Part shown: piece after piece, positions 55,014-64,000 of the stretch
Layout: each line of letters begins with the position of its first letter
Numbering within the stretch: position 1 is the stretch's first letter
From: Corallochytrium limacisporum Hawaii
Taxonomy: Eukaryota; Protista; Pluriformea
Length of the DNA stretch: 64,000 nt
Reading direction: 5' to 3'
NCBI GenBank assembly: GCA_002811645.1
Contig: PDIP01000022.1
Location: 27,375-91,374, forward strand
Position numbers and translations under genes: made by a program
The notes under the pieces: generated by a model
Told to the model about the DNA's origin: nothing
What the model saw: the letters and a program-made list of their open reading frames with translations, nothing else
Databases searched by the model: none

Positions 55014-56774
55014 TCACTCCCCTTGGGAGTCATTTGGCTCCATTTCCAGCTCACCACGCGTCACAGTCTCGATGGCGACGATTCGTCTTTTGCATCTTTC
55101 CCGAGCAGATTCTATAATTGCTACCTGTGCTTCGAGGTAGACCTTAATGTGATCAGCCAACCCACCAGCACTATGCGGTCCATGCTGCTGGACATATTCG
55201 TTAGTACTCTCCAGCGCACTTTGGATGGGCAGTTGCATGTGTTCCAGCACCTGCACCAGAGTGGTTAGGGCCGGCAGGTCCTGTGCTGCTTTCGAGTCTG
55301 GCATGTAACTGAAAAGCTCGTCTTTGCTAGCGTTCTGAAGCCATTCCATTTCTTTTGGAGTGGAGGCGAGGAGAATCCGTACGCTTGCAAGCAGCGGACC
55401 AGGAATGGAGGAAGGCGAGCTCGCCGACTCGCTCCATGGCCCTCTTAGCTTTTGCTCTCTGATATTTACATCGTGCCTCTCCAGAATCTCAGTCTTTTCC
55501 ACATGATTGGGATCTGCTTCATCGACACCTAGTTCGAATTCGTAAACGTCATGGGGATTCTCAGGGATAGAAAATCCGTAGAACAGGATGGCTTTGCTAT
55601 TTGGAATATTGCCATACGAGAGACAGACCTCGTCACCTTCTGTCACGCGCAAATAGCTTTGGTATTCGATAACGTTCCGCTCCTCATCGACTGCACCGTA
55701 CCTGCACACTTGGGCCCATGGACTATGATTCATAAGGTCTGCTGCAGGCACGATTGCTGCCCTGCGATGAGCCAGTCCCGGATACTTCAGTTGCATTGCG
55801 TAGGAGTACCATATCTCCACCATCCACAGGTAATTATCGAATGTGAAGACCTCTTGTGTATCAAAGACTGCCGGGTAGGCCTCTGCCAGACCATTTATCA
55901 TCTCGTGGTACCGATTACGTACATGCATTTGTGCGGACACAACTTCATCGTATAATGGCGTTCCCTCAAGCATTTGCTGCGCAGCCTCGAGGTCGAGTCG
56001 TAGTCCTGTATGCAGATTCGATGGCATAATACGCCAATAGGAGTAGAACCGTCCCTCTGATCCTTTCGCCCTGTCCGCTATGGAGTATAAGAGAGCCACA
56101 GTGTCCTCATCAATGTCACTTATCTCTGTCTTCGATGTGCCTGCCAACACATCCTTGAAAACGGAACCCATAGTGGGATCATCGAGGGCGGCACGGACAT
56201 CAATCACCTTGTCAAGCATAATTTCAAGCACACTGTCACCAGGCCGAATTGTCTTCCCGGGTCTTACAAAACACCCTCGCCATTCAAAACCATGATCTTG
56301 CTTTCTGCAAAACCGAGACTCAATTAGAGGCTCTGTGGCTGATGCCCACGCGCACAGTTCGTCAGCAGTCTGGTCCTGCACATTTGGGATTGAGGCAGTG
56401 GCTGGCGTGTGCATAGTTGTCTTCGATTGTCGCGCCAATTGAAGCATATAATCCGTGTACGGGTAGAGATCTGTGTTTAAAGTTTCAACGAAGCCCTCAC
56501 CAAGCAATTTGGCCCGTCGAATCAAAAGTGACAGAGCAGCTGACTCATTCCGCACCGAAATCAAGTCACCGGGACCGTCCGCGGGCATTTGTATTCCAAG
56601 GAAATAGAAGTCATCGTCATCCATGCAAAGAATTCTTGCTGTAAGGATCAATTTGCGCACTGGCGCATCCGTTTTGACAGGAAGTTCTATACCATGCTGC
56701 TTCAAGAGTACACGCTTAGGTTCCTGGAGCACATCCTGCACGGCAGAAAAGTAGGTTTCACCAAAAAGGTCCAT
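55014..56774 (-). CDS. SETD3/SETD6/Rubisco-LSMT-type non-histone SET methyltransferase, 586 aa
   Basis: WRGCFV..IRPGDSVLEI; IVPAADLMNHS; GDEVCLSYGNIPNSKAILFYGFSIPENPHD; C-terminal helical substrate-binding region. Confidence 0.88.
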   Translation of the reverse strand: MDLFGETYFSAVQDVLQEPKRVLLKQHGIELPVKTDAPVRKLILTARILCMDDDDFYFLGIQMPADGPGDLISVRNESAALSLLIRRAKLLGEGFVETLNTDLYPYTDYMLQLARQSKTTMHTPATASIPNVQDQTADELCAWASATEPLIESRFCRKQDHGFEWRGCFVRPGKTIRPGDSVLEIMLDKVIDVRAALDDPTMGSVFKDVLAGTSKTEISDIDEDTVALLYSIADRAKGSEGRFYSYWRIMPSNLHTGLRLDLEAAQQMLEGTPLYDEVVSAQMHVRNRYHEMINGLAEAYPAVFDTQEVFTFDNYLWMVEIWYSYAMQLKYPGLAHRRAAIVPAADLMNHSPWAQVCRYGAVDEERNVIEYQSYLRVTEGDEVCLSYGNIPNSKAILFYGFSIPENPHDVYEFELGVDEADPNHVEKTEILERHDVNIREQKLRGPWSESASSPSSIPGPLLASVRILLASTPKEMEWLQNASKDELFSYMPDSKAAQDLPALTTLVQVLEHMQLPIQSALESTNEYVQQHGPHSAGGLADHIKVYLEAQVAIIESARERCKRRIVAIETVTRGELEMEPNDSQGE

Positions 56775-57315
56775 GTCTCCTTCCTATTAGGATTCCTTCA
56801 TGTTCGGTAGCATCAAATACTAAACGTGGTGAATTGAATGGACTATAGTTAATCGTGACCACAGACGTCATTGATAAGCGTGTTACGGGTTCCCAGAAGT
56901 ACCTAAAGCGCGGCTTGACATCGCAAGAGAGATACTCTCCACGCGACTTTCTAGACCCGTTCCAGGGGCTATCGATTCGGAAGGTCGTCGGGAGGGGGTT
57001 TGTAGCGGCTCTTTACTCGTACGTTCGGACGGGTATCATTCTTTCCCTTGCGATCGGCGGCGGAAAATCGTGTCCACAAACCTTAGGCAATTGTCCTTGA
57101 CAGGGTATTTGTTCAAAAGGTGGTTCTTTGACTTCAAATCTCTTCTTCTAGTGCCCTCTGAACAAAGTATACAGTAGATAGAACGAAATCCAACACTAGT
57201 AGGCATTCAACGCGTAGCGATTGCAAATTCGGACAAGACATGTAACTCTATATCGATGACCGTCCTGATCAGCGCAGACGCCTAAGAGCCAGGCAATAAG
57301 ATATCAAACTGAATC

Positions 57316-60300
57316 ATGGACGCGATCAAAGCAGCTGTCGGTGTGTTATTGAATGATGGCAAAGCTTCCCAACCAGGAACCCCCAGGAAGGGACATGAGG
57401 AGAAGACGTCCACCATTGTAGCTGCGTTCCGCTCCGTCAAGAGTGCATATCGATCGCGCAAGATTGGTGCCGGCACCGGTGGTGGGGAAACAGACAGTAC
57501 AGCAAGCACGAGCTGGGATGACAAAGTAGCAGCGGTGGATCGCATCGTGCACGAAACTGTGTCCAATGGGCTGAACTCAGTAGACCACTTTAATGACATC
57601 TTGAGCACAGCCATCGAAGGCTTGTTTCAGGCCTACAACACAGGAGACAGCAACTTGCGGTTGGTGTGCGAGGAAGGACTAAACACTATCATCTTGCGAG
57701 TTCGTTCGCTACATCTTGGTCTACTTCAGGTCGAGCTATACAAGGAACTGCAAAACGAGCACTCGCAACAGCGGAGCCAGCGGTTGGCGTTTACAAAATT
57801 CGCTGCACTGGCCCACTTCACGCAGCCGAAGAAGTGCAAAACAATTGCGCCTTCCATGTTTCCATTGATGGCAGAGTATGTACTGCGAAAAGATGACGGC
57901 TTCCAGGAAATTGTGGGGTCCCACATCGACAAGATCATAAAAGTGTTTGGTCCTTACGCCACCCCGGAGAATATTCAGCTCATGGCTGACAGTTGTGTGA
58001 GAAGCATGGTAGAATCTTCATCGCCCACCAGTCGGCGTTCCGCAGGGTTCACTATTCAAGCCATGGTAAGTTATGGACCATCGCAAGATGAAACTCTTCC
58101 AATGGTGCTGGACATGCTCTGGAAGAACCACTCATCCAATGCGGGCACTGACGGGGACGTTACTGATGACCGTCTATCTGGGCTGATTGGAACAGCCATG
58201 TGCCTGAAGTATTTATTGGAGGCCATCACAGAGAAGCAAATGGTTAATCGGAACAAATGGCGGAGCCAGACACTCCCAATTTGGCACTTCCTTGCCACAA
58301 CTATTGAGGAACATGATCACAATGTCACTACACAGTGCCTTGAGGCCGCCATTGCGTTCATGAATTGTACGGAAAGGATGTTCAAGGCCCCGCTTGTGGA
58401 GAAACATGACGACTTCATTCTCTTCCATCAACGGGTGCTGAAGATTCTGCTTTTGCAGACTTCAGCGGAAACTAAGCAACAAAGGCCACTGCGTACAAGC
58501 AATCTTGCTCTTAGTCTCAGCTTCTTAGGTGCAATGCTCTCGTTGATGCCGCAGAATATCGATACAGGCATGCTTTCTGCCTTGCAGGAGCTTACAAGGA
58601 CCTTCTGTACACATGAGGACCAATTGGTAAGAGCTCAGATAGCGCAAGTTTGTGCAGGTCTTGCGCACAATGCATTGATGTATTCTTCAGATCCTTCAGG
58701 GCCGTACGATCGCTGCGACGTGCATCCAAGTCTCAGTTTAATGCACCGTCTCATCCTCGATTCTTCCCCGCAAACTTGCCGCACAGCAATCGCAGCAGCT
58801 GCATTGCCTTTCAATCCGTTGGTTGCCATTGGCTCGGCAACCGATATTCTTGTGACACTGGATTCCGTCCTGTGGCAATCTAAGAGCTCGTACTGGTTGT
58901 GTCGATACGAAGTGCTCAAATTCATTCAGAACTTGGACTTTATCAAGCTTGCTGTGCTCGATACCTTTAGCATTCAACCCATCACGCAGTCTACACCTCG
59001 CTCATCGATCTCCGAAGGGAGCACAAGTCCCCGCAGGCCGTCAATCCCCGCCACATTTGTTCGGAACCGCGGGGGGGCTTTCTTTGAGCGGTGCTGGCAG
59101 ATCTGTCTGTCACTCGTCTACGATGAAGATGAACGTGTGGCAGTGGCAGCCAGTGAATCACTCACTCGCATATTGATGAATGCCCCGGGTCAAACGGCAG
59201 GGGTAAGAGGCCTGTGGCAGGATGATATGAATGTGCAAGTTGATGGTCACCGTGGTGGCAGAGTTGTGAAAATGCCGGTCAACACTGATCGGTACTGCGA
59301 AGTCCTGGACGAGACGTTCCGATCTCTAACCCACACTCTGTTCACTTGCAGTTCATCAAAGCAGCAGTGTCTCTGTGCATACAGAGCCATTCGGGGTCTT
59401 CTAATCGACAACTGGGAAGCAAATGAAGTACGTAAACAGCGGGACCAGCGTGCGAATCTTTCTGACACAGTAATGGCATATGCAAATGACATTCTGGCAT
59501 TTTCCATTGAGCAACTCTCAACCAGTAATTTTGGCATCGATTTGGGCATCCATACTGAACTGCTGGGTGTGATCAGTCAGCTTCTGATGTACCAAGAACT
59601 GCATATCGCCACCGGTGTGCGGCAGAGGCTATTGGTACACATACTACGCTGTCTAAATGTCTTCAAGAGCACTAAGGAATCGCAGTACCGTGCCCAAGCC
59701 ACAAGCGGAAATGATAGCTCCAACGTCAAGTTTACAATGACCACCAGAGGCAAGCAAACAGAAAACGATTCTCCACATTTGGCTAAGAAGCAAGAGAAAC
59801 ACCCGGCACAGCTGGCTGGAAGCCCGAGGTCCGCTGGGGAGAGCGAAGAGCACCAGGTACCCCGTTCTGGACTGTGTGCGTTTGAGCACATTCCACAGTA
59901 CATGAATCTGAGAAACGTCCTGCAGGCAGCCCGAGATTCCGCCAGCACTTCACTCGATTTCACTCGCACAGACAAGTTTGTGGATCTGTTGAACGCACTA
60001 TTGGGCACTTTGTCGTGGATCATTGAACGTCTGGGCAAGGCATTTAAGCTCTACACCGAAGTGACCCTACACCTTCTGACTGGTGTCAGCACATTGGCAC
60101 CTACAGAAACCATAAGTTGTGAGCTTGCCCTACTGCGCGCACTTTACGCCACACAGACGCGATCCAAGGATCTGCGTGCGGGCCATGCGTTACTGCCAGA
60201 TCTCAGTGTCAAGTCTGAGACTGATTCAAATGCGCTGTGCGTGTCCTTTGAGCAACTATGCGCTGGAGATCGATTCGCGTTTAGGAACCGAAAGACCATC

Positions 60301-63300
60301 TTTTTGGGAGATGGAAACGTTGTCGCCGAGTCGCCAGCCAACGAAGTAAGTGATCTTTCCACCGAAAACGGGCAGGCTAATGTCAAGACAGATTCTGACT
60401 CCGTGCCTCTGGACAGAATTAGTCAGTTTGAGCCGCTGACCCTGTGGAGTGTGAATCAGTATGGCCGGACTGCCGATGTGTACCTCCAATGCGAAGTGAT
60501 CGACAAGATGATCTTTATGCTGCAGATTGGCATTGACCTTGAGGAATTGGGGATCACGAATCATCTGGTGGACATTATCAAAGGTCAGCTCGATATGGCA
60601 GCTCATGGATACCACGAGGCATACCGTGTCGCCTTGCCCTCAATCATTCGCTTTCTTTGCCTTTTGCGGCGTAAGCAACATCAAGGGTCCTTCGAAGCGA
60701 AGGCAATTGTGGATCTGACTATCGATTTGCTGCCTCGTCTTTTGCCCGATGTACCCACAGCACAGGGATGCATGGAAGCAATTCTTCATTTCCTGCTGCC
60801 TCAGGAAGGTACCGGGCCTTCAGAAGACGACATGGATTCGCTTCATGAATTCATAGAGTTCATGCTGAAGAATCTCTCGTACCGTAGTGTGGCACAGAGC
60901 TTTGAATTCCTGATGAGCATTGCATCAAACGACGTGGCCGCAGAAACGGCAGACAAGGTCCTTGAGAAGCTTATGGTAGATATGGTGAGCGCGGAGATTG
61001 TTTCCTATGAAGATGGTGCGATTTTGGCACTGCAACCCACAATTTTGTACATCAGGAATAGTCAGCATATCGTACAGCTTTTGCAAGTCGGGCTAAAGCA
61101 CCTCTGCAGACGCCTAGATGATGACGCAAACTCGAGAAACTACGGAGCGGAAGATGCCATTTCTGATTTCAGGTATTTGGAAGTGCTGCTTCTGACTGAA
61201 TACGTGCTTTACCATATTTCAGAAAAACTGAGATCGTTGGATAAAGACGCGCAGAAGGCTATAACTGCTATAGCTGGAGCAGTGGCCGATCTAGCCACTC
61301 GCATTCAGAGTTTGTACCACAGCGAAGACCTAGAGAACTATGCAGCTGAGTTGCTACGGTCGCACATGATCTACAATCGTCTGCTTATGAATCAAGCGCA
61401 ACCAACTAACGACCGCGAGCTGGGCCAAACATACTTGAAATTATTGCACGAAGTGCAGACCCGGAAGGCATACATCCCCATTCCTTCCACTGCAGTGTGG
61501 TATCGGTACTGTGTGGATTTAAACCAGACCTTTTCTGTGGTAGACAAGGCCAATCCATGCCAGGTCTTCGGCTGTGACACCACGCTTGGTGTGTTCGATG
61601 CCATGGCATTGGTCATTGTTGCTGTAACTTCTCAGAAGACCAAAAGTGTGCGTCTGCTGCGGGAATGGCATGGAGGATTAGAAATTGCCATGAATCACCT
61701 GGCCGAGGAGCGTACTGTGCAGGAAGCTTTGTCTGCCGTTATGGATGAGGGCGACCAGGAAATGCAAGAGGAGGTCATGGGCTATTTTGGGTCGTTGCTA
61801 TCTGACCGGGAAAGCCAACTCTCATACGATCGTGCCAAGCGCTGCTGCATCTTGGCACGGTTGTTACTGAAACCGAGCAACGTGCAGCGTGCCTTGGCTT
61901 TCTGTAGCTATTGTCCATACAGTGCCTTGCGCCGTCGCATGGCAAAGACCATTGAGGAATGTCTTGAAGGTCCCGAGGCGGTGGCGGAGGAGGTCAAGGA
62001 GTTCATGGAAGCCCACGGATCAAGTATGCGCATTTCGTTGTGCTTTGATTTGTCCAAGGTACCGCCTTCGAAGCTGATTACACCTCCGTTGTCGCCGAAA
62101 GTGGTGCTATTGGACAAAATTCTGAGCATCTCAGAAACAACGAAGGCGCTAATATTGCTGACCCAACGATCTGGTCAGGATGAGACCGCTGACGATGCCA
62201 GCCGTAATCTCACCCAGAATTTGATCTCTCAGTGCGAGGAGCTTCTCGATCGCATGAGTTCGCACAACATGAACATACTTACGGATCCCCACGCCATACA
62301 CATCTGCTGTACTGCAGCGGTGACAATCGGAGATGCGCTGCAGACTATTCGCATGAAGCGAAGAAGTTTGGAAGAGAAGGCCTTGGGCAAATTCATTGAC
62401 CCGGATGACATGAAACCCGAGGAAGATTGGGTAGTTTGTCGCCGGAGGTACGAGGCCACCGTGGACAATCTGGTCGGGTCCAGCCTCGCTGCATGCAATG
62501 CCCGCATCAGCCGCATGACAGTGGCCAATCCCCTGCCGTCAGCCCTGCTACTGACTCTGATCACCACATGGTCTTTCTGTGCGAGTTTGGAGCGAATGTG
62601 GTCACCCAGTGATACCAACACGCACTCTCTCTACAATAGTGAAGGCCGTCCTGAGAATACTTACGCTCGCCAGGGTCTGATGAAGCATACGAACCCAATA
62701 TCCTTTCTGTGCTTCTCCCTATGGGACACCATTGTGCCTGCCATGCAACGCAGGGAGTTCTGCCACCGCTTTCGACGCTGTCCAAGCAGCCAACGGCGAG
62801 CTATGTACTCGGGCATTCTGTATGAATGTGTGGCAGATATCTCCAAGAGCATGACTGCCGCGGGTATGCTCAAGATGGGCCAGCGTGTGCGATCAAAGCA
62901 GTACGTCATGCGCCAGGTTCTAGAGGATTGCGTAGTACGCCTGACCCGCGGTTCCTATGAGCAAGTCTTCCAGCACATGCTCCGGGCTGGTCGCTCTAAT
63001 GCTTTTTCAGTCTTTGAGCCTGAAGGTGACGGAGAGGATCAACTCCATCCCAGACCGGAAGACAATAACTTGTTTATTGATCTCGAGATGATGCATGATC
63101 CACAACACTTGGAAGAGTTTGTCAATGTCATCACTTTGTGTGGATGGCGGGATCGGAACGTGTTTGAGACCATGTGGAGTGCATTGCTCAGTGTGCTGGG
63201 TACTGCCCTGGGCCAGGCTGATGAGCCTGAATCAACCGAGCTAATCGTTTTCGCAGCCAAAGGACTTTTTGGCATGCTCTTGGATGGTCTCGCAGTCAGT

Positions 63301-64000
63301 AACGAACGCCGTGACTTTGGCCATGCTCGCTTCCATCCCCTCAGTCACGGCATCTGCCCTGGATTTGACTCCCGCGAGTGCGTGCTAGAAGTTTTGCAGC
63401 CTTGGGCCTCGACAGGGGCGCAGATGGGTGGTATTGCTCCTGCCTACGTTGGTCTGACTGGCGGTGCCACCTCGGTGGGTCGTAACCCACGTTTTGTGGC
63501 AGTGTCCCTAATTTCAACCATTTACCCCTCGGACCCATACTTTGCGCCATACATGGCCACTCTTCTAGATCTCATGGAGCCAAAACTGGAGCCCGAGGCC
63601 CCGTTTGCCCTGCGTGCTATGGTTGCTCGACTTTGTTCCCACTTGGTTCCCTACACTCCACGTCAGTACGCGAGCGAATTTCTAGCTCCATATATGGTTC
63701 GATGTATGGCGGAGAAGACTGAGGATGAGGATATGTTCACTCGCTGTTACATGTCTCTACTCTTCACAGGCACCCTTGGCCTGGGAAAAGAAGCTGATCA
63801 GAGACCGCTGACAACGTTTGTGTTGGAGACGCTGTTTCATGTCCTCAAGTGGGTCGTGGACAATGCACGTGAGTTGGAAATGATCGACAACTTTTGCACC
63901 AAGTGCTATTTCGCTGTCCTTAGGGAACGTGCCCGTGTGGCACGTAAAAGTCTGGCTCCGCGCGACAGTGTGCAGTTGACTCAGCGCCTCTACGAGCATG
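57316..64000 (+). CDS. HTT: Huntingtin ortholog, >2228 aa, truncated by window end; absent from the ORF track
   Basis: Manual translation: DSNLRLVCEEGLNTII..LQVELYKEL..RSQRLAFTKFAALAHFTQPKKCK; HDHNVTTQCLE; SSYWLCRYEVL; DEDERVAVAASESL; FEHIPQYMNL; FEPL..QY; ITLCGWRDRNVFETMWSALLSVL; in-frame stop at 57283 upstream, none seen downstream. Confidence 0.93.
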   Translation, partial: MDAIKAAVGVLLNDGKASQPGTPRKGHEEKTSTIVAAFRSVKSAYRSRKIGAGTGGGETDSTASTSWDDKVAAVDRIVHETVSNGLNSVDHFNDILSTAIEGLFQAYNTGDSNLRLVCEEGLNTIILRVRSLHLGLLQVELYKELQNEHSQQRSQRLAFTKFAALAHFTQPKKCKTIAPSMFPLMAEYVLRKDDGFQEIVGSHIDKIIKVFGPYATPENIQLMADSCVRSMVESSSPTSRRSAGFTIQAMVSYGPSQDETLPMVLDMLWKNHSSNAGTDGDVTDDRLSGLIGTAMCLKYLLEAITEKQMVNRNKWRSQTLPIWHFLATTIEEHDHNVTTQCLEAAIAFMNCTERMFKAPLVEKHDDFILFHQRVLKILLLQTSAETKQQRPLRTSNLALSLSFLGAMLSLMPQNIDTGMLSALQELTRTFCTHEDQLVRAQIAQVCAGLAHNALMYSSDPSGPYDRCDVHPSLSLMHRLILDSSPQTCRTAIAAAALPFNPLVAIGSATDILVTLDSVLWQSKSSYWLCRYEVLKFIQNLDFIKLAVLDTFSIQPITQSTPRSSISEGSTSPRRPSIPATFVRNRGGAFFERCWQICLSLVYDEDERVAVAASESLTRILMNAPGQTAGVRGLWQDDMNVQVDGHRGGRVVKMPVNTDRYCEVLDETFRSLTHTLFTCSSSKQQCLCAYRAIRGLLIDNWEANEVRKQRDQRANLSDTVMAYANDILAFSIEQLSTSNFGIDLGIHTELLGVISQLLMYQELHIATGVRQRLLVHILRCLNVFKSTKESQYRAQATSGNDSSNVKFTMTTRGKQTENDSPHLAKKQEKHPAQLAGSPRSAGESEEHQVPRSGLCAFEHIPQYMNLRNVLQAARDSASTSLDFTRTDKFVDLLNALLGTLSWIIERLGKAFKLYTEVTLHLLTGVSTLAPTETISCELALLRALYATQTRSKDLRAGHALLPDLSVKSETDSNALCVSFEQLCAGDRFAFRNRKTIFLGDGNVVAESPANEVSDLSTENGQANVKTDSDSVPLDRISQFEPLTLWSVNQYGRTADVYLQCEVIDKMIFMLQIGIDLEELGITNHLVDIIKGQLDMAAHGYHEAYRVALPSIIRFLCLLRRKQHQGSFEAKAIVDLTIDLLPRLLPDVPTAQGCMEAILHFLLPQEGTGPSEDDMDSLHEFIEFMLKNLSYRSVAQSFEFLMSIASNDVAAETADKVLEKLMVDMVSAEIVSYEDGAILALQPTILYIRNSQHIVQLLQVGLKHLCRRLDDDANSRNYGAEDAISDFRYLEVLLLTEYVLYHISEKLRSLDKDAQKAITAIAGAVADLATRIQSLYHSEDLENYAAELLRSHMIYNRLLMNQAQPTNDRELGQTYLKLLHEVQTRKAYIPIPSTAVWYRYCVDLNQTFSVVDKANPCQVFGCDTTLGVFDAMALVIVAVTSQKTKSVRLLREWHGGLEIAMNHLAEERTVQEALSAVMDEGDQEMQEEVMGYFGSLLSDRESQLSYDRAKRCCILARLLLKPSNVQRALAFCSYCPYSALRRRMAKTIEECLEGPEAVAEEVKEFMEAHGSSMRISLCFDLSKVPPSKLITPPLSPKVVLLDKILSISETTKALILLTQRSGQDETADDASRNLTQNLISQCEELLDRMSSHNMNILTDPHAIHICCTAAVTIGDALQTIRMKRRSLEEKALGKFIDPDDMKPEEDWVVCRRRYEATVDNLVGSSLAACNARISRMTVANPLPSALLLTLITTWSFCASLERMWSPSDTNTHSLYNSEGRPENTYARQGLMKHTNPISFLCFSLWDTIVPAMQRREFCHRFRRCPSSQRRAMYSGILYECVADISKSMTAAGMLKMGQRVRSKQYVMRQVLEDCVVRLTRGSYEQVFQHMLRAGRSNAFSVFEPEGDGEDQLHPRPEDNNLFIDLEMMHDPQHLEEFVNVITLCGWRDRNVFETMWSALLSVLGTALGQADEPESTELIVFAAKGLFGMLLDGLAVSNERRDFGHARFHPLSHGICPGFDSRECVLEVLQPWASTGAQMGGIAPAYVGLTGGATSVGRNPRFVAVSLISTIYPSDPYFAPYMATLLDLMEPKLEPEAPFALRAMVARLCSHLVPYTPRQYASEFLAPYMVRCMAEKTEDEDMFTRCYMSLLFTGTLGLGKEADQRPLTTFVLETLFHVLKWVVDNARELEMIDNFCTKCYFAVLRERARVARKSLAPRDSVQLTQRLYEH

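Follow-up and report, generated by a model that had tools for sequence, protein, structure and literature searches.

Huntingtin gene at the locus

The window analyzed here is a 64,000-nucleotide stretch of contig PDIP01000022.1 from Corallochytrium limacisporum, and from position 57316 onward it encodes a genuine, expressed, single-copy, intronless huntingtin (HTT) ortholog of a marine unicellular relative of animals. On translation, the ATG at 57316 opens a forward-strand reading frame of 2,675 codons with no introns. Codons 1 to 2228 lie in the window (57316 to 64000), the stop lies 1,343 bases past the window end, and the full extent on the contig is 84690 to 92717. A search of the genome returned a single HTT copy.

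The 2,675-aa protein passes three Pfam huntingtin models, all above their cutoffs: Htt_N-HEAT_1 (PF20926; 104 bits versus a cutoff of 31.2; E = 1e-29; residues 103 to 251), Htt_N-HEAT (PF12372; 79.9 bits versus 26.2), and Htt_C-HEAT (PF20927; 29.4 bits versus 25.3). Its length falls within the range of about 2,500 to 3,100 aa that we used for membership of the HTT solenoid. Sequence comparison with the PDB matched human HTT chains (E = 1.5e-20), aligning residues 70 to 247 with human residues 101 to 276. The first HEAT helices occupy 57514 to 58068 (forward strand), with helical structure from residue 67, the PDB alignment from residue 70, and Htt_N-HEAT_1 at 57622 to 58068. An AF2 model of residues 1 to 450 has a pLDDT of 87 overall and above 90 in its HEAT part; the best eight Foldseek matches to this model are human HTT chains (TMq, 0.70 to 0.73; E values down to 7e-11). 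The N-HEAT fold of this segment is thus like that of human HTT in the HTT-HAP40 structures 6X9O and 6EZ8 (TM, 0.70 to 0.73), whereas the Corallochytrium protein is about 470 residues shorter and has neither a polyQ tract nor a proline-rich region. The original prediction presented this as a hidden huntingtin, a description that does not hold: the protein was already deposited in a public sequence collection carrying HTT Pfam domains, and HTT of unicellular holozoans has been published before (PMC7725122).

Start codon and transcript

The start codon (57316 to 57318, forward strand) sits in a strong context, with A at −3 and G at +4. A TGA lies in frame two codons 5′ of it, there is no in-frame ATG among codons 2 to 180, and the second in-frame Met is codon 181, within Htt_N-HEAT_1. 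RNA-like contigs from two runs in two studies have their 5′ ends at 57173 and 57177, approximately 140 nt upstream of the ATG, positions that derive from assembled contigs and do not prove the exact transcript 5′ end. The interval from 56840 to 57172 is covered by a DNA run and by neither RNA-like run. Over 57173 to 58032, the RNA-like contigs of both studies are colinear with the genome and contain no joints. Judging from the contig starts, the probable 5′ untranslated region of the huntingtin mRNA spans 57173 to 57315 (forward strand), and direct reading of the sequence places two small upstream ORFs on the same strand, an ATG-TAA at 57240 to 57245 and a second of 9 codons at 57256 to 57285.

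If the start were mis-assigned, with initiation elsewhere or with an intron removing the N-terminal extension, the motif IVAAFRSVKS discussed below would be truly N-terminal or untranslated. The two upstream ORFs and the imprecision of contig-derived 5′ ends are compatible with such an error, but we regard it as very improbable given the strong ATG context, the stop two codons upstream, the absence of in-frame ATGs through codon 180, the unbroken colinearity of contigs from two studies, and the essentially intron-free Corallochytrium genome (PMC5560861). Neither initiation 3′ of the motif nor an additional 5′ exon was accepted, given the 5′ in-frame stop, the next Met at codon 181, and the contigs colinear from 57173. 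A candidate 36-nt in-frame intron (GT at 57341, AG at 57376) that would trim the extension was also rejected, as both transcript contigs are unspliced there. The reading frame and the RNA-like contigs bear out a Met1 upstream of IVAAFRSVKS, as the original prediction had it, and an mRNA that is unspliced there.

Layout of the pre-HEAT region

The translation of 57316 to 63999 gives, from Met1 to V71, exactly the N-terminal peptide quoted earlier, in identical order; residues 1 to 68 are encoded by 57316 to 57520. The 69 residues ahead of the HEAT repeats would be organized as a first helix (helix A), a spacer, a second helix (helix B), and a linker rich in Gly, Thr, and Ser. Helix A (residues 2 to 12; 57319 to 57351, forward strand) is short and mostly hydrophobic and is predicted in both AF2 models with a pLDDT of 57 to 67. 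It is followed by a Gly/Pro/basic spacer predicted to be disordered (residues 13 to 24; 57352 to 57387, forward strand; AF2 coil; pLDDT, 40 to 53). The AF2-predicted helix B is long (residues 25 to 51; 57388 to 57468, forward strand) and bears an N17-like amphipathic core at residues 32 to 46 (57409 to 57453, forward strand), which by MAFFT, HMMER, a position-specific scoring matrix (PSSM), and the hydrophobic moment is the part of the pre-HEAT region that most resembles N17 and is the most amphipathic. The motif IVAAFRSVKS corresponds to residues 34 to 43 (57415 to 57444). With the N17 sequences of other HTTs aligned, AF2 places helix B at residues 25 to 51 with a pLDDT of 69 to 86; once the other N termini are removed from the alignment, the helix is placed at 27 to 51 and its pLDDT falls from 86 to about 50.

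The Gly/Thr/Ser-rich linker (residues 52 to 66; 57469 to 57513, forward strand) is modeled as a flexible coil (pLDDT, 47 to 56), and its columns in the MAFFT alignment are gap rich and variable across all HTTs. By alignment, this linker is the apparent positional equivalent of the variable spacer that holds the polyQ and proline-rich regions in vertebrates. Two elements of the earlier description thus stand: a low-complexity Gly/Thr/Ser coil at residues 52 to 66 fills the polyQ slot, and an extra N-terminal extension of about 30 residues precedes the N17-like helix (33 residues lie before I34). A Pfam search with residues 1 to 75 alone matched no family. A tandem duplication relating helices A and B was considered and rejected, as the best ungapped match of residues 1 to 20 within residues 23 to 69 falls elsewhere (P = 0.14). 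Within the spacer and the first residue of helix B, T-P-R-K at residues 22 to 25 (57379 to 57390) fits the CDK-type S/T-P-x-K consensus and is a putative kinase site.

N17-type helices across huntingtins

In huntingtin exon 1, N17 governs how the fragment binds membranes, leaves the nucleus, and aggregates. We compared the Corallochytrium N terminus with those of 39 other HTTs, including Sphaeroforma, Creolimax, Chromosphaera, Ichthyophonus, three choanoflagellates, and six named Amoebozoa. In all 39, an N17-like helix (taken at the L7 equivalent) begins 2 to 7 residues after Met1. The conserved pattern is hydrophobic-hydrophobic-[KR]-[AS]-hydrophobic-[ED]-x-hydrophobic-[KR], after [ED]-[KR], and an HMM built from animals only recognized 7 of the 14 non-animal N termini at P < 0.05. 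The HEAT-1 anchor follows the L7 equivalent by 17 to 79 residues (median, 30; two-thirds between 25 and 45), and linkers of at least 60 residues occur in 2 of the 39. In the true orthologs of Ichthyophonus, Balamuthia, and Microstomoeca, the N terminus is barely recognizable.

N17 has been described as conserved across vertebrates (PMC11753208), and its conservation has been extended to amphioxus (PMC8004120); our literature search found no paper linking huntingtin, N17, and choanoflagellates. Because choanoflagellate, ichthyosporean, and amoebozoan HTTs carry an N17-type helix, the module does seem to be older than animals. The proposal that N17 predates animals therefore appears sound, on the strength of 39 other HTT N termini that were beyond the reach of the original prediction.

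The nearest relatives of the Corallochytrium protein are ichthyosporean and choanoflagellate HTTs (Sphaeroforma, Creolimax, Chromosphaera, Salpingoeca urceolata, and S. kvevrii), at 32 to 36% identity in HEAT-1. Their helix-to-HEAT-1 spacing is similar, and the signature V-x-x-[FY]-R-[ST]-hydrophobic is common to the HTTs of Corallochytrium, Sphaeroforma, and Creolimax. In these relatives, however, the helix starts at residues 3 to 5, and none has an N-terminal extension. A k-mer search for close relatives of the Corallochytrium protein gave only the protein itself, a metagenome scan gave none, and exhaustive phmmer searching gave no match with an E value between 1e-297 and 1e-20.

Relationship of helix B to N17

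Like human N17, the core of helix B is an amphipathic helix of about 14 residues, and in both vertebrate N17 and helix B a flexible low-complexity linker comes next, followed by HEAT-1. Human L7, M8, F11, and L14 correspond to I34, V35, F38, and V41, and A10, S13, K15, and S16 are identical in the two proteins. In contrast to vertebrate N17, the Corallochytrium helix is internal, has a basic net charge, is predicted to extend to residue 51, and is followed by neither polyQ nor a proline-rich region. At the four best-conserved charged positions of N17 (E5, K6, K9, and E12), Corallochytrium has S, T, A, and R, respectively. The hydrophobic moment of residues 1 to 69 peaks at 0.58 over residues 33 to 47, compared with 0.49 for the human N17 core.

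MAFFT aligned residues 30 to 46 under the N17 helices of the 39 HTTs, and with relaxed thresholds the best local HMMER match within residues 1 to 69 fell at residues 34/35 to 45. At default thresholds, hmmsearch with 20-residue N-terminal models found no match in the full protein, and the animals-only HMM gave no match at all on this HTT. We then scored the protein with a 10-mer core PSSM built from 41 other HTTs, with this protein left out and registers taken from the MAFFT columns. IVAAFRSVKS scored 10.0 bits and ranked first of 2,666 windows, although profile similarity of this kind has no power to tell homology from convergence of amphipathic helices. The per-window frequency of such a score in other HTT bodies is 2e-4, for a region-wise P of 0.012, and with all four profile widths the motif ranked first or second (region-wise P, 0.012 to 0.07). 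The score of 10.0 bits lies mid-range among the leave-one-out scores of 14 non-animal N termini (−13.6 to 19.6) and above those of all four ichthyosporeans. An early EM-derived 12-mer PSSM, which was partly mis-registered (Balamuthia and Pyxidicula on the HEAT-1 anchor), gave 0 bits and rank 5. Against human N17 alone (as a 17-residue string), a window at residue 1599 outscored IVAAFRSVKS by one point. The score of the whole region under the HMM was 1.0 to 1.7 bits (P = 0.009 to 0.02 versus shuffles but 0.12 to 0.18 versus random 69-aa HEAT segments).

The original prediction aligned IVAAFRSVKS with human LMKAFESLKS. This equivalence survives in part: three methods align residues 32 to 46 with N17 and the helix is amphipathic, but the charged positions are unmatched and the animals-only HMM is silent. 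The motif does score above shuffled sequence under the PSSM (region-wise P = 0.0006 to 0.008), whereas the proposed pattern AF.S[LV]KS was found in no other HTT retrieved.

The Ser13 and Ser16 phosphosites define vertebrate N17 only. S40 and S43 occupy the S13 and S16 columns of human N17, and both serines are indeed present, as had been pointed out. Among non-animals, Ser fills the S13 column in 1 of 12 sequences and the S16 column in 1 of 11; for the other sequences, the respective counts are 4 of 27 and 3 of 27. Because Ser is rare in these columns of non-animals, the columns are not conserved and the retained serines would carry no homology signal, being without weight and silent on descent.

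Origin of the N-terminal arrangement

We infer that helix B is most likely homologous to N17 rather than convergent on it. As an account of the whole gene, we favor, with somewhat better than even confidence, an expressed huntingtin ortholog in which helix B is most likely an N17 homolog displaced behind a lineage-specific extension of approximately 30 residues. A different history, which we consider unlikely, is that the ancestral N17 was lost or diverged past recognition and that helix B is a lineage-specific element, its likeness to N17 arising by chance or from shared physical chemistry. Loss of signal of this kind is real in the orthologs of Ichthyophonus, Balamuthia, and Microstomoeca, and the internal position of the helix is unprecedented (0 of 39 HTTs). 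The unmatched charged positions, the lack of a match to the animals-only HMM, and the modest standing of the whole-region score among random HEAT segments all point the same way. What argues against convergence is that the motif ranks first or second of about 2,666 windows with four profile widths, that the region-wise P is 0.01 to 0.07 even when amphipathic HEAT helices serve as the background, that the distance from helix to HEAT-1, 36 residues, is canonical, and that the F/Y-R-S/T-hydrophobic signature is common to the nearest relatives.

It is also conceivable, although improbable in our judgment, that helix A (residues 1 to 12) is the true positional homolog of N17, followed by a 56-residue linker into which helix B was inserted. 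All 39 other HTTs have a helix 2 to 7 residues after Met1, AF2 places a helix at residues 2 to 12 here, and linkers of at least 60 residues have precedent. Amoebozoan HTTs (Cavenderia, Soliformovum, Cochliopodium, and Pyxidicula) start M-[DE]-hydrophobic-hydrophobic-[KR]-A, which helix A resembles over residues 1 to 6 (M-D-A-I-K-A, compared with M-D-L-I-K-A in Cochliopodium and M-A-A-I-N-A-A-I in Pyxidicula). An amoebozoan-only PSSM gives 4.2 bits at residues 4 to 13 (per-window frequency, 0.003), and an M-anchored amoebozoan 12-mer ranks helix A first in the protein. Past position 6, however, helix A is unlike the amoebozoan helices, as it lacks acidic residues and has a Gly at mid-helix, and it does poorly on every non-amoebozoan profile (−5 to −11 bits with holozoan, non-metazoan, and all-lineage profiles). 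Helix A has a uniformly hydrophobic face and a hydrophobic moment of just 0.30 to 0.34, and both MAFFT and HMMER prefer helix B. Furthermore, the amoebozoan profile is less relevant because the organism is a holozoan.

Implications

Returning to the proposed displaced N17 homolog, the wider evolutionary scenario seems to us evenly balanced between true and false: the N17 helix would be ancestral to the HTTs of animals, choanoflagellates, ichthyosporeans, and Amoebozoa and far older than polyQ, and in Corallochytrium it would have moved inward behind an extension of about 30 residues with a helix of its own. The collected N termini suggest that the helix belongs to the core of huntingtin and predates animals, and that the spacer was already variable when polyQ expanded within it. 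The linker would then represent this ancient spacer, in which polyQ and polyP arose later, in deuterostomes. The gain is modest, as unicellular holozoan HTT is known (PMC7725122), helix homology rests on about 10 bits, and the searches found no close relatives to confirm it.

By analogy with N17, helix B may serve as an amphipathic helix on a flexible tether, a putative binder of membranes or partner proteins, and could be open to regulation by phosphorylation. If the helix is indeed a displaced N17, polyQ and polyP would have arisen inside an ancient variable spacer, and a free N terminus would be unnecessary for the core function of the module. Corallochytrium HTT would then be a natural experiment with an internally placed helix, in an organism whose 24-Mb genome is almost free of introns.

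Gene identity

The ATG at window position 57316 opens an uninterrupted frame of 2,675 codons with no intron, which extends beyond the window and ends at contig position 92717 (G000:C143); the peptide quoted in the original prediction is the exact translation of 57316-57520. Three Pfam models matched above their curated cut-offs (Htt_N-HEAT_1, residues 103-251, 104 bits; Htt_N-HEAT, 80 bits; and Htt_C-HEAT, 29 bits), all human huntingtin (HTT) chains in the PDB were matched (E 1.5e-20; Corallochytrium residues 70-247 against human 101-276), and the best eight Foldseek matches to an AlphaFold2 (AF2) model of residues 1-450 (pLDDT 87) were human HTT, with TM scores of 0.70-0.73. Given these matches and the single copy of the gene in the genome, the assignment to huntingtin was right. 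Contrary to the original prediction, the gene is not hidden: the protein is already public with HTT Pfam matches, and HTT of choanoflagellates, filastereans, and ichthyosporeans has been published before (PMC7725122). The nearest HTT homologues are those of the ichthyosporeans Sphaeroforma, Ichthyophonus, and Creolimax. Query words were shared by DNA runs of 2017 and RNA-like runs of 2015, and small shares of them are present in marine metagenomes. The assembly comprises 24,109,830 bases in 286 contigs; this agrees with the genome size of 24.1 Mb published for C. limacisporum, for which the intron density was given as 0.0 per CDS kb (PMC5560861).

Start codon, leader, and neighboring gene

An in-frame TGA lies two codons 5' of the ATG, and the next in-frame Met, codon 181, is within the conserved domain. 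Transcript evidence came from two RNA-like runs (sequencing runs behaving as transcriptomes) of different studies, with a DNA run for comparison. RNA-like contigs cover the neighboring gene to 56829 and 56839 and resume at 57173 and 57177, colinear with the genome and without a joint; in the interval 56840-57172 only the DNA run gives coverage. We therefore infer an mRNA that carries the whole 69-residue pre-HEAT region behind a leader of ~140 nt, the exact 5' end not being fixable from contigs. The start codon thus lies upstream of the motif IVAAFRSVKS, and an error of start or splicing is highly improbable.

The leader holds two tiny uORFs, a minimal ATG-TAA (57240-57245) and one of 9 codons in the main frame (57256-57285) that ends 31 nt before the start codon; both may take part in translational regulation. 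Divergent from HTT, on the minus strand, is a 586-aa gene (55014-56774) with a Rubisco-LSMT substrate-binding domain (Pfam PF09273, E 3e-11). The two start codons are 541 nt apart (56775-57315), and since only 56840-57172 is uncovered by RNA-like contigs, the promoter region common to both genes is ~330 nt. Relative to the genome, RNA-like run X3 carries two changes in the HTT body, A>G at 58977 and G>C at 59187, each in one contig at a depth of ~8; these could be strain differences or errors.

N17-like helices in other huntingtins

Exhaustive searching with phmmer returned 94 representative HTTs, none of whose alignments to the Corallochytrium protein extends upstream of residue 43. Nearly all of their N-termini open with a helix like N17, the amphipathic helix of human HTT residues 1-17: those of animals, of Salpingoeca urceolata, S. 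kvevrii, and Microstomoeca, of Sphaeroforma, Creolimax, and Chromosphaera, and of the amoebozoans Cavenderia, Soliformovum, Cochliopodium, Paradermamoeba, and Pyxidicula. With an animals-only N-terminal HMM, 7 of 14 non-animal N-termini outscored their own shuffles at p<0.05, every match being at residues 1-14. The proposed pre-animal origin of the N17 module is therefore supported independently of the Corallochytrium protein. N17 has been called conserved across vertebrates (PMC11753208) and in amphioxus (PMC8004120); our literature search found no paper combining huntingtin, N17, and choanoflagellates.

Several individual homologues deserve mention. In P0065, a metagenomic HTT fragment of 187 aa, a short polar extension precedes an N17-like helix (K-L-L-D-N-L-K-K-S-L) that begins near residue 13; this is the sole other hint of a non-terminal N17 without an obvious gene-model artefact. 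P0055 and 14 cluster members represent an environmental eukaryote with an apparently intronless 2755-aa HTT on assembled contigs of 10-13 kb; the gene call begins within HEAT-1, and the true N-terminus is outside it. P0049, an HTT of 2422 aa, resembles P0055. The gene model of P0053 (Planoprotostelium fungivorum) is 3312 aa long, is annotated as having a sialate O-acetylesterase domain, and reaches HEAT-1 only at residue 741; separate genes were probably merged in this model.

Candidate counterparts of N17 in Corallochytrium

Two segments are candidates: helix A (residues 2-12) and helix B (residues 25-51, including IVAAFRSVKS at 34-43). Sequence evidence favours helix B. MAFFT placed residues 30-46 beneath the N17 helices and handled 2-29 as an insertion, and the best local HMMER match within residues 1-69 was 34/35-45. 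IVAAFRSVKS scored 10.0 bits against a PSSM built on 41 other HTTs and covering the ten core columns from L7 to S16 (human numbering); this was the top of 2666 windows in the protein and mid-range among leave-one-out scores of 14 non-animal N-termini; such a score has a per-window frequency of 2e-4 in other HTT bodies, hence a region-wise p of 0.012. Across four profile widths it ranked 1-2 (region-wise p 0.01-0.07; shuffle p 0.0006-0.008). Within residues 1-69 the hydrophobic moment is greatest at the helix B core, where it reaches 0.58 (human N17 core, 0.49), and the helix lies 36 residues from the HEAT-1 anchor (HTT family median, 30). AF2 predicted both helices with or without other N-termini in the alignment; helix B pLDDT fell from 86 to ~50 on their removal, so the higher figure is owed to the alignment.

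Helix A would be the true N17 homologue if the helix had kept its terminal place, and it scores 4.2 bits under an amoebozoan-only profile, but it falls to -5 to -11 bits under all others, and we regard this as quite improbable. Convergence or chance is a less remote explanation of helix B's likeness, albeit still an unlikely one. Helix B is preceded by 33 residues, against 2-7 in each of 39 other HTTs; S, T, A, and R stand in place of E5, K6, K9, and E12, the charged positions that are best conserved; the animals-only HMM reported no match in this protein; the whole-region HMM score was equalled or beaten by 12-18% of random 69-residue HEAT segments; and a first, partly mis-registered PSSM ranked the motif only 5. 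No close relative in which helix B might be conserved was found in the searched collections. The AF.S[LV]KS pattern is absent from all other HTTs retrieved, yet the segment outscores its shuffles. We consider helix B somewhat more probably than otherwise a displaced N17 homologue, which by analogy with N17, as for any function ascribed to it, would act as a tethered amphipathic helix. The Corallochytrium N-terminus is unusual in the placement of its N17-like helix.

The argument from the two N17 serines fails: Ser occupies the S13 column in 1/12 non-animals and 4/27 other sequences, and the S16 column in 1/11 and 3/27, so that the two serines here, with ancestors lacking them, cannot be "retained." The G/T/S-rich residues 52-66, a predicted coil, do fall in the polyQ slot as claimed; this holds for all HTTs, the gap-rich, variable columns of which contain polyQ and a proline-rich region in vertebrates, and in other lineages runs that are rich in G or in S/T. 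In P0028, P0032 (the shrimp Halocaridina), P0092, and P0024, all HTT homologues, a Gly-rich run directly follows N17 and a second conserved block, M-A-S-L-A, precedes HEAT-1; judged from these sequences, low-complexity tracts seem to have expanded in the polyQ slot independently. In the disordered spacer between helices A and B, T-P-R-K (57379-57390, residues 22-25) is a full CDK-type S/T-P-x-K consensus.
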